Of a stretch of DNA of 64,000 nucleotides, positions 19,900 through 61,020 are shown piece after piece (the stretch's first letter is position 1; each line of letters starts with the position of its first letter). The translations under genes were made by a program, and so were the position numbers. Location: the sequence record OR228459.1. One strand, 5' to 3'. The notes under the pieces are model-generated. The model was not told the origin of the DNA, made no database searches, and worked only from the letters and a program-made list of their open reading frames with translations.

Positions 19900-20326
19900 A
19901 GATCACATAGAAGTACCTCATTATTACATGTCACGATGTAAAAATGATGAACTGCTAGGATTTCTTCCAGTATTAGAGCCAGAACAGCATTCATACTACA
20001 CGGTAGAGAATATTTCACCATCAAGAGAATTTGATCGTGTTTCTCCCGTCTTTGGTTCATACAGTGATGTAATTACCGATTCTGAATATTGGTATCAGAA
20101 ACCCATTCATAAAAATGCTCGTGAAGAAGATAAACTACAGCACGAGTACTATAGAGATGAATTCTTAGAGCGTTTAGAAACTCACAAATACTGCGTATGG
20201 TTTGTGGGTTGTGATGATGGTGATAACTTCATACGCTTTGAAAGCAAAGATAAAGCACTAGAATATCTTTCTAGTATTGAATATTTTGAAGAAATATATA
20301 ATAATCCACACTGCCAGTTGTGGTAA
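19883..20326 (+). CDS. hypothetical protein
   Basis: AAGGA SD before MLLQIE. Confidence 0.7.
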   Translation: MLLQIEDHIEVPHYYMSRCKNDELLGFLPVLEPEQHSYYTVENISPSREFDRVSPVFGSYSDVITDSEYWYQKPIHKNAREEDKLQHEYYRDEFLERLETHKYCVWFVGCDDGDNFIRFESKDKALEYLSSIEYFEEIYNNPHCQLW

Positions 20327-20328
20327 TA

Positions 20329-20353
20329 AAAAGCACCCGATGGGTGCTTTTTT
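20329..20353 (+). terminator. intrinsic terminator (copy 1 of a repeat pair)
   Basis: AAAAGCACCC-GA-TGGGTGCTTTTTT. Confidence 0.85.
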
Positions 20354-20387
20354 CGTTTGGTTCTTTATTAGCCAATGTGCACTTTTC

Positions 20388-20401
20388 TTGATCTAGATCA
20401 A
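20388..20401. promoter_or_regulatory. FNR box upstream of nrdD
   Basis: TTGAT-CTAG-ATCAA, an exact match to the consensus TTGAT-N4-ATCAA, centred near -42 of the adjacent promoter. Confidence 0.75.
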
Positions 20402-20430
20402 GGGACAAACCGGGATATTGGTGATATAAT
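20402..20430 (+). promoter_or_regulatory. GGGACA-class promoter of the nrdD operon
   Basis: GGGACA-17 bp-TATAAT. Confidence 0.75.
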
Positions 20431-20477
20431 AATTGTGTACTATCTAAATAAATCACCACAATGACACGGAGAGTCGA

Positions 20478-22283
20478 ATGAAAAAAGATAATTTATATAA
20501 TGACGTTTCTGATTTTTTAAATCAAAGTAACCAAGATTTATTAAATGAAAACGCCAATAAAGATGCAAAGATAGTCAATACACATCGTGATTTACTAGCA
20601 GGAATACTTTCTAAACATTATGCAGAAGATGTTATTTCTGAAGATTTAATGAAATGGCATACAGATGGCTATGGTCACATTCATGATCTTGATTATTATA
20701 TTAGTCCATTAACTAATTGTTGTTTAGTAAACTATGAAGATATGTTAGAGAATGGATTTAAAATTGGAAATGCACAAGTTGGTACTCCCAATAGCATAGG
20801 TGTTGCAAGTACAATACTAACACAAATTGTTTTAGCAGTATCTGCTAGTCAATATGGTGGACAATCATTACCACATATTGACAAAGGCTTGGAACCATAT
20901 GTTGAAAAATCATATAAAAAACTTTTAAAACTTCAACAACAGTTCAATCTTAGTGATGATTTTGTAGAATATTCATTGAAAAAAGAAGTTTATGATGCAA
21001 TGCAAGCATTATTATATCAAGTCAATACAATAACATCTAGTAATGGACAAACACCTTTCGTTACTATAAGCCTAGGATTAAGCACTTCTAAATTTGGTAG
21101 AATGATAACAGATGCATATTTGGATGTGCATGAAAAGGGATTGGGAGTTGACGGTGCAACACCCGTTTTTCCAAAAGTTGTTTTCTTTTTACAAGAAGGT
21201 ATCAATATGAATAATAATGATATCAACTATGACTTGAAACAAAAAGCATTATCGTGTGCTGCTAAACGTATATACCCTGATTTTGTTTCAGTACCATTAA
21301 ATTTAAAAGTTACAAAAAGTACAAGTGAAGCAGTCACACCAATGGGTTGTCGTTCATTCCTTTCTCATTGGACTGATAATAACGGACACGAAAAATATAA
21401 TGGTCGATTTAATTTGGGTGTGGTTAGCATTAATCTTCCACTATTGGCCTTAGAATCATCATCTGATGGGGATTTTTTCACTAAAGTGGATTATCACATG
21501 CAAATGGCATATCGTGCACATATGAATCGTGTTGAACGTATCAAAAACATGAAAGCCAAGCAGAACCCAATTTTATTCACCGAAGGAGTACTAGCAAGAT
21601 TAAATCCAGAAGACACCATTGAATCATTGTTCTATGATGGTTATGCAAGTATTAGTATTGGTTATGTTGGTTTAGCAGAATGCTCCGAAATTTTAAAAGG
21701 AAATATTGATAAAACTTTTTGTAAATCAATTTTATCATATATGAAATCAAAATGTGAAGATTTCAAAGCTAAAAGTAAATTATCATTTAGTTTGTATGGA
21801 ACACCAGCAGAAAGTCTATGTTATAAATTCGCTAGAACAATTGAGAAAAAATACCCAGCAGTACTTAAACGAGATTTCATAACAAACTCATTCCACCAAC
21901 CAGTATGGATTGATAGTTCTCCATTTGAAAAATGGAATTATGAAGAAGGTTTTGCATTCTTGAGTAATGGTGGAAACATTAGCTACGTAGAAGCTCCAAA
22001 TCTATCCAACAATTTAAAAGCATTAGAAACACTAGTTGATTATGCATATGAACGAGTTCCTTATTTTGGTATAAACCAACCGGTAGATCGGTGTTATGAA
22101 TGCGGTTTTGAAGGTGAATTTGTAGTTGATAAAAACGGGTTCCACTGTCCGAATTGTAATAATAGAAATGACAAAACAATGTCTGTCATTAGGAGGGTTT
22201 CTGGATACCTAGGAAATCCATCTTCTAGAGGTTTTAACAAAGGAAAGCAACAAGAAGTAATTCAAAGAACTAAACATATATAA
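20478..22283 (+). CDS. nrdD: class III anaerobic ribonucleoside-triphosphate reductase, without ATP cone
   Basis: HIHDLDY, TNCCL, SQYGGQ, FPK, PMGCRSFL, GRFNLGVVSINL, YGTPAESL, CYECG..CPNC, RRVSGYLG. Confidence 0.96.
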   Translation: MKKDNLYNDVSDFLNQSNQDLLNENANKDAKIVNTHRDLLAGILSKHYAEDVISEDLMKWHTDGYGHIHDLDYYISPLTNCCLVNYEDMLENGFKIGNAQVGTPNSIGVASTILTQIVLAVSASQYGGQSLPHIDKGLEPYVEKSYKKLLKLQQQFNLSDDFVEYSLKKEVYDAMQALLYQVNTITSSNGQTPFVTISLGLSTSKFGRMITDAYLDVHEKGLGVDGATPVFPKVVFFLQEGINMNNNDINYDLKQKALSCAAKRIYPDFVSVPLNLKVTKSTSEAVTPMGCRSFLSHWTDNNGHEKYNGRFNLGVVSINLPLLALESSSDGDFFTKVDYHMQMAYRAHMNRVERIKNMKAKQNPILFTEGVLARLNPEDTIESLFYDGYASISIGYVGLAECSEILKGNIDKTFCKSILSYMKSKCEDFKAKSKLSFSLYGTPAESLCYKFARTIEKKYPAVLKRDFITNSFHQPVWIDSSPFEKWNYEEGFAFLSNGGNISYVEAPNLSNNLKALETLVDYAYERVPYFGINQPVDRCYECGFEGEFVVDKNGFHCPNCNNRNDKTMSVIRRVSGYLGNPSSRGFNKGKQQEVIQRTKHI

Positions 22284-22295
22284 GAGGTAATTATT

Positions 22296-22658
22296 ATGAC
22301 TATTAAAGCAAAACAAATTTTATCTGGTGAACATACTGGAACTATTCTAATTCATGATGGAGAAGTTGCACGTATTATTGTTTCAAAAACATTTTCAGAA
22401 AATGATGAAGTACTTTTGAATATTTTTGACAATGAAGAAATGCGTGATGTAATGATTGAAGAAACACCAAATGTCGAAGGCGGTCAACATTTAAATGTTA
22501 ATGTGTTATCACGTGAACAATTAGAAGATGCTCAAAAACATCCTGAGAAATATCCACAACTAACTATTCGTGTTTCTGGCTATGCAGTTCGTTTTAATTC
22601 CCTAACAAAAGAACAACAAGACGATGTTATTAGTCGTACATTTACAAAATCACTATGA
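22296..22658 (+). CDS. grcA: autonomous glycyl radical cofactor
   Basis: [12 protein letters not shown]...[35 protein letters not shown]. Confidence 0.95.
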
Positions 22659-23125
22659 ATTATCAAACAATAATTAAAGATGACTTAATAAATGGGGAGG
22701 GAGTTAGATGCTCCCTTTTTGTTTCAGGATGTAGTCATGGATGTGTAGGTTGTTTCAATGAAAAAGCATGGGATTATCGTTCAGGTCAAAAATTTAGTAC
22801 TGAAACAATAGAAATCATACGAAGCGAATTATCAAAACCACATGTATCTGGTTTATCGTTACTTGGTGGTGATCCACTTATGCCAAAAAATATAAGTACT
22901 GTTATAGATTTATGCAAACTCATTAAAGATGAATTTCCAGAAAAGAATATATGGTGTTGGAGTGGTTATACATTAGATGAAATACAAAATAATCATGCAA
23001 AATCTATTTTAAAATATATTGATGTTTTAGTTGATGGGAAATATATTGATAGTGAGAAAAATCTAAAACTTCCATATCGTGGTTCTAATAACCAACGCAT
23101 TTTGAAGAAAGATATAGATTATTAA
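22655..23125 (+). CDS. nrdG: anaerobic RNR activating enzyme (radical SAM)
   Basis: [51 protein letters not shown]. Confidence 0.96.
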
Positions 23126-23156
23126 ATACATAGACCTATTGTTATAAAATAAACTA

Positions 23157-23180
23157 AAAGCACCCATTGGGTGCTTTTTT
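23157..23180 (+). terminator. intrinsic terminator (copy 2 of a repeat pair)
   Basis: AAAAGCACCC-AT-TGGGTGCTTTTTT. Confidence 0.85.
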
Positions 23181-23188
23181 TATTTCCA

Positions 23189-58362: not shown

Positions 58363-61020
58363 ATGGCTGATTTATTATCACCCGGTGTAAGTGTAACCGT
58401 CACTGATGAATCGATTTCTGCACAAGCCGCACCCGGTACTGTGCCACTTTTCGTCATTGCAACTGCTCAAGACAAGCTAGTTCCCGGTAGTTCAGCTATC
58501 GCTTCTGGTACATTAAAGGCAAATGCTGGTAAGTTACAACTTATTACATCACAAAAAAACGCTCTTGATACTTTTGGAACACCAGTGTTTCAAAAACATC
58601 TAGGGTCTGTAGTTCAAGGTGATGAGCTAAACGAGTATGGCCTCCACGGTCTATACAGCTATATGGGAATTGCAAACCGTGCATATGTTGTACGTGCTGA
58701 CCTTGACCTAAACCAATTAACACCAAGTGCTACTGAGCCTACTGGTGATGTACCTAACGGTACTCTATGGTTTGATACTTTTGCTTCTCAAGTTGAAGCA
58801 TATGTAGCAAATGTGGAAAACCCACAAAGTTTCTATGACTGGACTCTAAAACCAGTTCGCATTGTAAGTGCTGAATTGATTACTGATGTAAGTACTGTAG
58901 GATTAAACGTTGACGATCTAGTAATCCGTCATGTTCCAAGTACTGGTCAAATGCTAGTTTACAAATTTGAAAGTGCTGGTCTAGTTCAGGTTGAAACCTA
59001 TCTATCACCAATCAACAAAGTACCTACTGGTACTGCTATCCATGCTGGTGATATCTGGCTACGTGATGGTTATGTGAAGAATGGTTCTAACTACTTCGGC
59101 ACTCGCTTTGTAATTAAGCGTTACGCTTCCCTAACTAAAACTTGGGTTCCTGTTGATACTTTCACTGGTACAAGTTTCTATGATATTGAAGCAAAAACTG
59201 GTGTATCTAGTAATGCATATATCGCTGCACTATTCGATTGGGATAGCTATAGTTTCTCATTATACATGAAAACTGGCAACATTCCAACTATCAGTGCTTC
59301 TGCAACTCCACTAGGTCAAATTAACCTAGATATTGCACAAGCTGATTGCTTCCTAACTATTAGCTATCTTAACAAATCTGCTAAAGTACTTGCAGTACCA
59401 AAAGGTCAAATCAAGAATGCAGAAACTATTGTTGCTAATCTTAACAAAGTGGCAGCATTGATCAATGATGGTTTTAGTTTTAGTGTACAAAACAATGGTG
59501 TAATTATCACCAACAAACTAGGCTATAGTTTTAAAGTAACTCAAAGTGGTGAAGCACTATTCGATGCAGCTAATATGAATAAACTATCTACTGATAGTAG
59601 TAACTATTCACAAATCAATCCACGTATTATTCGTGTTTCTGATTCTGCACCACGCTCTACTGCGTCTGAAGGTACATACTGGTACGATTTCAGTAATTCT
59701 GATAATCTAACTGTTACTCTTTATGTAGCGAACTTAAGTACTGAAGATTGGGATAAAGTACAATCCAACAACATGTATCTACAAGTTGATGAACCTGCCG
59801 CAGACCGTGATTTCTGGGTTCTCCCACTATCACAAGGTGTTGATGGTTATCAATTCTATCGTAATGTACGTGGTGAATGGGTTAAACTAGACCCAGCAGA
59901 CCAAAGTACCCTAAACGGTATGATCTTTGAAGATTTTAACGGTGAAGTTCCAAGTGCTAACCTATACCAAAATGGTATGCTTGCAATTGATATGGGTAAT
60001 ACTGAGGGTGTTGTTAAGCAAATGGTTAATGGAAAATGGGTTGTTGTTAGTGGCGTCGCCATTGACGGAAGCGGTCTATTTGGTCGTCATGCACAACGTC
60101 AAATCATCGTAGAAGCACTAGCTGCTGTAATCGTGGGTAACGAAGCAATTCGTTCTGAATTCATCGATTTCAACCTAATGTGTTCACCGGGCTATGTAGA
60201 ACTTCTAGATGAGTTTGTAACACTAAACACTGATCGCAAAGAAACTGCTTTCATCGTAACTGATGTTCCAGCACGTCTAACTCCAAGTGCTACTGCAATT
60301 CAAGAGTGGGCTACTAATGCTAATAATGCACCAAGTAATGGTGATATTGGACGTACTACTGCTTATGCTTATGCAGCACAATACATGGGTTGGTGCCTAA
60401 GTACTAACGTCGATGGTGAAGAAGTTGCAGTACCGGGTAGTACTATCGCGATGCGTACCTATGCTTATAGCGACAGCGTAAGTTATGTTTGGTTCCCACC
60501 TGCTGGTACACAACGTGGCGTTGTAAGTAATGCTGCTTCTGTAGGTTACATCACTGATGAAGGTGAATATGCTCCAGTAGTATATAACAACGGTCAACGT
60601 GATACCATGTACGTTAACAAGATTAACCCAATTGCGATGCGTCCAAGTCGTGGTCTATTAGTATTTGGTGACAAAACACTAGCTGCTGATGAAGGAAGTG
60701 CACTAAGCCGTGTAAACGTAGCACGTCTAGTTGTTTACATTCGTCGTCAACTAGAGATTCTAGCAGATCCATTCTTGTTCCGTCTAAACACTGCAAGTAC
60801 TCGTCAAGAGTTTACTGGTGTAGTTAACAGTTTCCTAGCTGAAATTCTACAACTAAATGGTCTATATGACTTCTTAGTAGTATGTGATGAATCAAACAAC
60901 ACCCCAACTCGTATCGATAGAAACGAATTGTGGATGGATATCGCGATTCAACCAGTACGTAGTATTAACTTTATCTACATTCCAATCCGTATTGAGAAAA
61001 CTGCTTCAGCAGGTGCTTAA
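58363..61020 (+). CDS. contractile tail sheath protein (T4 gp18-like)
   Basis: LLSPGVSVTVTDES, FGTP, NEYGL, AYVVRAD, VWFPPAG..RG, GDKTL, LSRVNVARL, VVCDESNNTP..IDRNEL..DIAIQP. Confidence 0.93.
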   Translation: MADLLSPGVSVTVTDESISAQAAPGTVPLFVIATAQDKLVPGSSAIASGTLKANAGKLQLITSQKNALDTFGTPVFQKHLGSVVQGDELNEYGLHGLYSYMGIANRAYVVRADLDLNQLTPSATEPTGDVPNGTLWFDTFASQVEAYVANVENPQSFYDWTLKPVRIVSAELITDVSTVGLNVDDLVIRHVPSTGQMLVYKFESAGLVQVETYLSPINKVPTGTAIHAGDIWLRDGYVKNGSNYFGTRFVIKRYASLTKTWVPVDTFTGTSFYDIEAKTGVSSNAYIAALFDWDSYSFSLYMKTGNIPTISASATPLGQINLDIAQADCFLTISYLNKSAKVLAVPKGQIKNAETIVANLNKVAALINDGFSFSVQNNGVIITNKLGYSFKVTQSGEALFDAANMNKLSTDSSNYSQINPRIIRVSDSAPRSTASEGTYWYDFSNSDNLTVTLYVANLSTEDWDKVQSNNMYLQVDEPAADRDFWVLPLSQGVDGYQFYRNVRGEWVKLDPADQSTLNGMIFEDFNGEVPSANLYQNGMLAIDMGNTEGVVKQMVNGKWVVVSGVAIDGSGLFGRHAQRQIIVEALAAVIVGNEAIRSEFIDFNLMCSPGYVELLDEFVTLNTDRKETAFIVTDVPARLTPSATAIQEWATNANNAPSNGDIGRTTAYAYAAQYMGWCLSTNVDGEEVAVPGSTIAMRTYAYSDSVSYVWFPPAGTQRGVVSNAASVGYITDEGEYAPVVYNNGQRDTMYVNKINPIAMRPSRGLLVFGDKTLAADEGSALSRVNVARLVVYIRRQLEILADPFLFRLNTASTRQEFTGVVNSFLAEILQLNGLYDFLVVCDESNNTPTRIDRNELWMDIAIQPVRSINFIYIPIRIEKTASAGA

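Follow-up and report, generated by a model that had tools for sequence, protein, structure and literature searches.

Does a lytic phage read the oxygen status of its host through the host's own regulator? The question is raised by the promoter region of the anaerobic ribonucleotide reductase genes (nrdD, a grcA-like gene and nrdG) in a 64,000-nucleotide stretch of phage DNA, here called the window, where a preliminary description had noted a perfect consensus site for the host regulator FNR and had proposed exactly this kind of sensing. The window is 100% identical to Klebsiella phage fENko-Kae01 (OR228459.1, 360 kb), and window positions equal record positions minus 62,000. Salmonella phages Munch, 7t3, SE_PL and PHA46 share the window region at 98.6% identity, and all five are RaK2-like jumbo myoviruses. 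The proposal was supported by the conservation of the site, by its FNR-type half-sites, by its spacing of 22-23 bp from the -10 element and by the lack of an FNR encoded by phages. We put the probability that host FNR binds this box and regulates the phage nrd operon at roughly 0.7.

The palindrome and the predicted promoter behind it, P1, comprise the following elements:

20387-20402, no strand: 16-bp palindrome CTTGATCTAGATCAAG, which encloses the FNR box
20388-20401: FNR box TTGATCTAGATCAA (TTGAT-CTAG-ATCAA), matching the consensus TTGAT-N4-ATCAA at 10 of 10 specified positions
20402-20407, + strand: GGGACA, the element at the -35 position of the phage promoter class cTTGGGACAAAC, abutting the FNR box
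20422-20430, + strand: extended -10 element TG-a-TATAAT (TG at 20422-20423, TATAAT at 20425-20430), after a 17-bp spacer from GGGACA
near 20436-20437, + strand: predicted start of P1, placed from the position of the -10 element

Both the sequence and the coordinates of the perfect consensus within its palindrome were reproduced, and the box centre (20394.5) lies 30.5 bp 5' of the first T of TATAAT, as claimed. Relative to the predicted start, the centre falls at -42.5 if the hexamer occupies -12 to -7, or at -41.5 if the start lies 1 nt closer, in agreement with the earlier estimate of about -42, near the class II activation position. Of 23 E. coli promoters that FNR activates directly, 19 carry their site at -41.5 +/-4 (Myers et al. 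2013).

A single occurrence of the box is weak evidence by itself because the exact consensus was found twice in the window against 0.33 copies expected, and two or more copies appeared in 6 of 100 shuffled sequences; it is position and conservation that carry weight. The second exact copy, TTGATGGTTATCAA at 59840-59853, lies within the tail sheath gene (58363-61020, 885 amino acids) and is most likely due to chance. Among the 12 sites in the window with at most one mismatch, the one before nrdD is the sole intergenic site. P1 falls into a phage-wide promoter class, cTTGGGACAAAC-N10-11-(T)GTGATATAAT, with 16-17 bp between GGGACA and TATAAT, whose members in the window are:

2052, 12182, 20402, 37024, 47261 and 54203, + strand: six GGGACA promoters

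The other five do lack the box, as had been stated, and have A/T-rich sequence ending in CTT in its place. The class looks like a counterpart of the 'divergent RpoD-like' promoters (TGAAACG…TGGTATAAT) listed for phage CBB (CBB paper).

Conservation was assessed by comparing the nrdD upstream regions of fENko-Kae01 and 20 further RaK2-like phages or contigs, 21 regions altogether. The further regions came from Munch; five IMG/VR contigs; CBB, GAP32, XbC2 and Kaldavass; BF, pEa_SNUABM_47 and fHe-Yen9-04; Hallingskeid; EJP2, 121Q, ph0011 and A4; a sixth IMG/VR contig; and RaK2. Their NrdD proteins are 66-99.7% identical to that of the window, and the phages infect Klebsiella, Salmonella, Escherichia, Cronobacter, Pectobacterium, Serratia, Erwinia and Yersinia. 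Except for the Xanthomonas listed for XbC2, we take the isolation hosts to be Enterobacterales that possess FNR. Among the close relatives are phages of E. coli K-12, such as 121Q and Sharanji. Column conservation was computed on an alignment of 16 of these upstream sequences, and box-to-promoter distances were measured in 20 regions.

The sequence TTGAT-N4-ATCAA or TTGAT-N4-GTCAA, with no or one mismatch, was present upstream of nrdD in 21/21 regions, 88-104 nt before the ATG. Of the ten box positions that the consensus specifies, nine do not vary in the alignment, compared to 7 of the remaining 116 ungapped columns (Fisher p = 6.6e-9); the last box position is always A or G. Outside the fENko-Kae01 clade, flank identity to fENko-Kae01 drops to as little as 41-59%. 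Judged from this alignment, the box upstream of nrdD is a clean phylogenetic footprint. According to the preliminary description, close relatives with the operon but without the box would speak against the proposal; we looked for such cases and found the opposite, as all 21 regions keep the box. Every copy has half-sites of the TTGA (FNR) type and not of the GTGA (CRP) type, and the first T is invariant across the aligned phages. This first half-site position, T versus G, is the one that discriminates FNR from CRP sites.

Restriction and Dam sites were considered as the conserved feature and rejected, as the E. coli and Klebsiella clades lack the XbaI site and the two GATC sites but keep TTGAT-N4-(A/G)TCAA. 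In the window, each half-site contains a GATC site (20390-20393 and 20396-20399). Both are common to the CBB/BF clade, Hallingskeid keeps one, and the E. coli clades and RaK2 have none. Phage BF carries an adenine methylase gene near the locus (L007:1-412, by our locus numbers), and adenine methylation could modulate binding to the box in some phages. The host given for phage XbC2 (L011), Xanthomonas vesicatoria, is a strict aerobe, yet the phage has the same box and class III reductase genes. Its nrdD regulatory region is closely similar to that of Erwinia phage Kaldavass, and it may be worth re-examining which host it is assigned to or which hosts it infects in nature.

The distance between box and -10 element is likewise constrained. 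Six regions (Hallingskeid, EJP2, 121Q, ph0011, A4 and RaK2) have a perfect TATAAT at 22 bp (predicted centre -41.5), and the five of the fENko-Kae01 clade have TG-n-TATAAT, with the hexamer at 23 bp (predicted centre -42.5). The CBB/BF clade also has 23 bp, with weaker hexamers (TATTAT and TATTTT, with TTGAAT and TTTTTT once each). These predicted positions fall within the class II range of FNR. No -35-like sequence follows the box in the 15 relatives outside the fENko-Kae01 clade (GAGAAA, AGAAAA and similar occur there), and for this reason the core promoter of most relatives looks activator-dependent. Two clade-specific features were also seen in the CBB/BF/GAP32 clade (L006, L007, L009, L010, L011, L013, L054 and L061): a hairpin, (AT)ACCCC-N7-GGGG(TAT), about 20-45 nt after the box, and a conserved AAACGTTAAC element 5' of the box, which is part of a promoter-like TGAACAAACG…TAAAAT sequence.

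We examined whether phages themselves encode a protein that could read the box. A tblastn search with E. coli FNR (from NC_000913.3) against 50,697 phage records returned no FNR homologue except one Listeria fragment. A phage-encoded FNR or CRP was rejected as the reader, as no relative of either is encoded at tblastn sensitivity; the box would therefore be read by host FNR. That the host nrdDG and yfiD/grcA genes are FNR-regulated, as the preliminary description had it, is documented in the literature, and FNR activation of nrdDG and yfiD holds across Enterobacteriaceae, including Yersinia, and Vibrionaceae.

The phage locus thus resembles host nrdDG in that the same enzyme pair stands behind TTGAT-N4-ATCAA-type sites of the same oxygen sensor, but the layouts differ. 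In front of E. coli nrdD stand two boxes, TTGAGCTACATCAA and TTGATGCAAAGCAC, both imperfect and 31 bp apart; they begin about 249 and 218 nt ahead of the start codon, and the leader is long. The phage promoter, in contrast, has one perfect box and a leader of about 40 nt. Since the host layout differs in this way and the phage NrdD is of a short, 601-aa type compared to 712 aa in the host, the phage promoter is not a recent copy of the host promoter. NrdR boxes have been reported at the homologous Salmonella nrdD promoter; by eye, no full NrdR box was found in the phage nrdD promoter region, where a half-site overlaps the -10 element and is not conserved.

The phage locus also resembles the class II promoters of yfiD/grcA, focA-pflB, fnrS and ydhY, where a single site at -40.5 to -42.5 abuts or overlaps the -35 element as the phage box does. 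The sites of yfiD and focA-pflB are centred at -40.5 and those of fnrS and ydhY at -42.5 (Myers et al. 2013), with a second yfiD site at -93.5. The yfiD gene encodes a spare glycyl-radical protein, and the phage operon holds a look-alike of it. These host promoters are chromosomal, with mapped starts and chromatin immunoprecipitation evidence, whereas the phage site is predicted only.

No earlier report of FNR sites at nrdD of phages, or in jumbo phages, turned up in full-text literature searches. The paper on fENko-Kae01 is silent on promoters and on anaerobiosis, and the CBB paper lists promoters, with that of nrdD not among them. The use of host sensors by lytic phages is already known and class II FNR promoters belong to textbook knowledge; what is new would be the FNR box at a phage nrdD gene. 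Cyanophages offer the precedent, with PhoB boxes upstream of pstS and phoA and NtcA sites in their promoters. There, as proposed here, a lytic phage borrows an environmental sensor of its host to time an auxiliary metabolic gene, although sensor, signal (here oxygen), host group and gene all differ. We know of no report of FNR in such a role.

Similar boxes were also found in other phage lineages. In 80 IMG/VR loci with NrdD relatives, the 310 nt around the start of the gene held sites with at most one mismatch at 6.6 times the density of the rest of the loci, an enrichment due mostly to jumbo phages. Stephanstirmvirinae (ESCO37 and two IMG/VR contigs) have a one-mismatch box upstream of nrdD, and an unrelated 128-kb contig (L104, NrdD 40% identical) has one after a terminator, in both cases with 21-22 bp to the -10 element; we regard these boxes as independent cases. 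T5-like phages were rejected as evidence. One member has TTGACTCAGATCAA about 99 nt before nrdD, but the box is not conserved, being degraded (…GATCAT, or TAGCACAGATCAA) in most of 20 IMG/VR relatives, and by hand count its centre is near -69.5 of a strong TTGACA-17-TATAAT promoter, out of phase. No FNR-like box was found in the T4-like and rV5-like nrdD loci that we read. The T4 nrdD (sunY) and nrdG genes and rV5 nrdD are class III reductase genes of lytic coliphages and homologous to those of the window, but in the T4-like and rV5-like loci nrdD lies inside a longer operon with no intergenic promoter, whereas nrdD of the window phage has its own predicted promoter and box.

Sequence, geometry, conservation and intergenic uniqueness of the box are observed, whereas binding by FNR, activation and a response to oxygen are inferred. 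According to the model that we favor, in an anoxic cell the pre-existing host FNR would carry its [4Fe-4S] cluster and be dimeric. The dimer would bind the box, centred about 41.5-42.5 bp 5' of the predicted P1 start, and activate host sigma-70 RNA polymerase at P1 (TG-n-TATAAT) by a class II mechanism. In air, FNR would be inactive and stimulation of P1 absent, which would save the phage the cost of an enzyme that oxygen destroys; it would rely instead on an aerobic class I reductase, such as has been attributed to RaK2-like phages (CBB paper). A phage-type late promoter, P2, would serve as a second promoter 20 bp downstream. The GrcA-like protein could, by analogy with YfiD, repair a glycyl-radical enzyme clipped by oxygen. 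A plausible target would be host pyruvate formate-lyase, the supplier of formate, which is the reductant of class III reductases.

The second promoter is predicted from the following elements:

20445-20450, + strand: TAAATA, T4-late-type promoter element P2, 33 nt 5' of the nrdD ATG and invariant in relatives
7057, 9893, 23191, 34847, 38688, 51425, 55188, 56759, 58311, 61085 and 61860: further TAAATA sites in the window, upstream of gene starts

Sites of this kind in the window stand 31-57 nt before gene starts, often directly after a terminator, and the genes behind them include those of the tail sheath, two tail tube proteins and four other virion proteins (virion proteins having been detected by liquid chromatography-tandem mass spectrometry, LC-MS/MS). 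The TAAATA upstream of the gene that follows the nrd operon is conserved in 11 phages. TAAATA has the features of a T4-type late promoter, namely a TATAAATA-like box roughly one helical turn upstream of the start and late genes downstream, without a -35 element. Furthermore, (A/C)TAAATA has been described as the T4-late-like promoter of CBB and GAP32, and a gp55-like sigma factor, CBB_244, was reported in CBB (CBB paper). As a conserved TAAATA with late-promoter features lies downstream of P1, the nrd operon probably has tandem promoters, P1 and P2.

Several points weigh against the favored class II model. The core promoter of fENko-Kae01 is near-consensus (GGGACAAAC, then TG-n-TATAAT), so that FNR may boost it rather than switch it on. 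P1 scored 10/12 with the TG in a promoter scan, has an extended -10 element and belongs to a phage-wide class, and because of these features FNR is possibly a mere booster in this phage and P1 may be largely FNR-independent. P2 could offer a route to expression without FNR, whatever the oxygen level. Two of the CBB-clade hexamers at the class II distance, TTGAAT and TTTTTT, lack the key A, and the spacer hairpin of the CBB/BF/GAP32 clade, with a T-rich stretch behind it, resembles a terminator and overlaps the -10 element. Within the N4 of the box, positions T, A and G (20394-20396) are 94-100% conserved while the symmetry partner, 20393, is only 62% conserved, an asymmetric constraint that, from the alignment, is unexplained by FNR recognition alone. 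Host polymerase or phage DNA might also be modified during infection so that FNR is blocked; a GATC lies in each half-site. Finally, the distance from the start of the box to the start of TAAATA is 57 nt in 20/20 regions (the window and 19 loci; L002-L018, L054, L061 and L062), and such rigid coupling suggests a constraint beyond class II activation.

This last observation is the basis of the strongest alternative, in which FNR acts mainly on the TAAATA promoter, or on both promoters, from a class I-like position and aids polymerase carrying the phage gp55-like sigma factor. With TAAATA at about -11 to -6, the box would be centred at about -61.5, a class I position, and the two elements lie about five helical turns apart, centre to centre. 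The 57-nt distance is fixed although the 43 nt between box and TAAATA have diverged to near saturation, the -10 element shifts by 1 nt between clades and the distance from TAAATA to the ATG varies from 31 to 47 nt in the same regions. Neighbouring intergenic spacers of these phages do carry insertions and deletions, and TAAATA is the sole other fully invariant block in the alignment of 16 sequences. The two CBB-clade phages with a defective class II -10 element keep an intact TAAATA, and the gp55-like sigma factor of CBB fits the same scheme. T4-type late promoters, however, need no upstream element, and those of T4 are not known to respond to activators bound upstream; in the T4 late complex the clamp takes the upstream end, and the alpha C-terminal domains are displaced and ADP-ribosylated. 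We know of no precedent for a host activator at a T4-type late promoter. Moreover, the perfect TATAAT at class II distance in 11/20 regions is hard to square with an irrelevant P1. We consider it unlikely that FNR works mainly through TAAATA, and give similarly small odds to the idea that it also activates the gp55-like-sigma polymerase from -61.5, which would lock the box to TAAATA. If true, a host oxygen sensor would have been co-opted together with a phage sigma factor, and oxygen control would extend throughout infection.

The palindrome might instead be the operator of a phage regulator unrelated to FNR, its agreement with the FNR consensus being coincidental. The T, A and G of the N4 are conserved beyond what FNR requires, and these phages encode hundreds of unannotated proteins, with at least one predicted transcriptional regulator. 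But the conserved box positions coincide with those specified by FNR, and the one that varies is the weakest position of the FNR motif. It would also be a large coincidence for the lone intergenic site in 64 kb to stand before genes that host FNR controls, and similar boxes occur in unrelated phage lineages. We regard this explanation as improbable.

Still less credence is due to the idea that FNR binds the box but represses or blocks, either as a roadblock to read-through from upstream or as a repressor in the CBB clade. What prompts it is the CBB-clade TGAACAAACG with TAAAAT (29 nt), which resembles the divergent RpoD-like promoters and ends 1 bp before the box, so that the box would lie at about +1 to +15 of this promoter-like element. 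Yet the TGAACAAACG element is not among the listed CBB promoters, the other clades have a terminator and not this element in front of the box, and shutting off an anaerobic enzyme under anoxia would be physiologically senseless. As for a functionless chance palindrome, an exact consensus is indeed not rare in 64 kb, as the copy in the tail sheath gene illustrates, but this explanation is effectively refuted because the box is kept at a fixed position across 21 phages despite their diverged flanks.

Returning to the operon that FNR is proposed to regulate, its genes and boundaries are as follows:

20328..20352, + strand: intrinsic terminator of the upstream unit, stem GCACCC/GGGTGC followed by a T run
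20468..20473, + strand: ribosome-binding site of nrdD, GGAGAG, nearly invariant in relatives
20478..22283, + strand: nrdD, class III (anaerobic) ribonucleoside-triphosphate reductase (NF006732)
22296..22658, + strand: GrcA-like spare glycyl-radical domain protein, 120 aa (best match TIGR04365)
22655..23125, + strand: nrdG, radical-SAM activase of NrdD (TIGR02491)
23156..23181, + strand: intrinsic terminator at the operon end, stem again GCACCC/GGGTGC; the phage Munch annotation also marks a terminator at this place

The earlier naming of the genes as nrdD-grcA-nrdG was confirmed for NrdD (761 bits against NF006732, cut-off 657) and NrdG (196 bits against TIGR02491, cut-off 126). For the 120-aa protein it stood in part, as GrcA (TIGR04365) was the best match but its 137 bits fall under the cut-off of 170. 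The protein has the Pfam Gly_radical domain and probably works like GrcA, as a putative member of the TIGR04365 equivalog family. From the arrangement of genes and terminators, the three genes appear to form a self-contained transcription unit bounded by two terminators.

A hairpin homologous to the upstream terminator is present in most relatives. The two terminators flanking the operon are near-identical (AAAAGCACCC-N3-GGGTGCTTTTT) and, save for one variant, are the sole GCACC…GGTGC hairpins in the 64 kb. The same stem is kept at both positions in many relatives, and these bracketing terminators make the nrd unit look like a cassette. Which genes stand between nrdD and nrdG differs from phage to phage: there are none in EJP2 and Hallingskeid, fENko-Kae01 has the GrcA-like gene alone, ph0011 and A4 have a GrcA-like gene and DUF4326, RaK2 has two small open reading frames annotated as vs.6 and NrdA.1, and in the CBB and BF groups as many as four further reading frames occur, including a 'structural protein'.

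A riboswitch or other leader RNA was rejected, as no structure is predicted for the leader (z = +1.3) and its Rfam matches, none of which exceeds the gathering score, are terminator look-alikes. Therefore, the conserved elements would act at the DNA level. In MK773491.1 (7t3) and PP191103.1 (PHA46), the region homologous to 20375-20462 of the window is annotated as a 'hypothetical protein' coding sequence; this is probably a spurious small reading frame, comparable to the minus-strand frame at 20271-20459 of the window.

If host FNR does regulate the phage nrd operon, a strictly lytic phage of enterobacteria would clearly be using a global regulator of its host as an environmental sensor, with expression of an oxygen-labile pathway of deoxynucleoside triphosphate synthesis matched to the oxygen state of the infected cell. 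The fixed spacing to the late-type promoter raises the question of cooperation between a host activator and a phage sigma factor. The hosts of these phages inhabit oxygen gradients such as those of the gut, plant tissue and sewage, and these jumbo phages are being considered for therapy. Phage performance may thus differ between aerobic laboratory tests and the anoxic sites where phages would be used.
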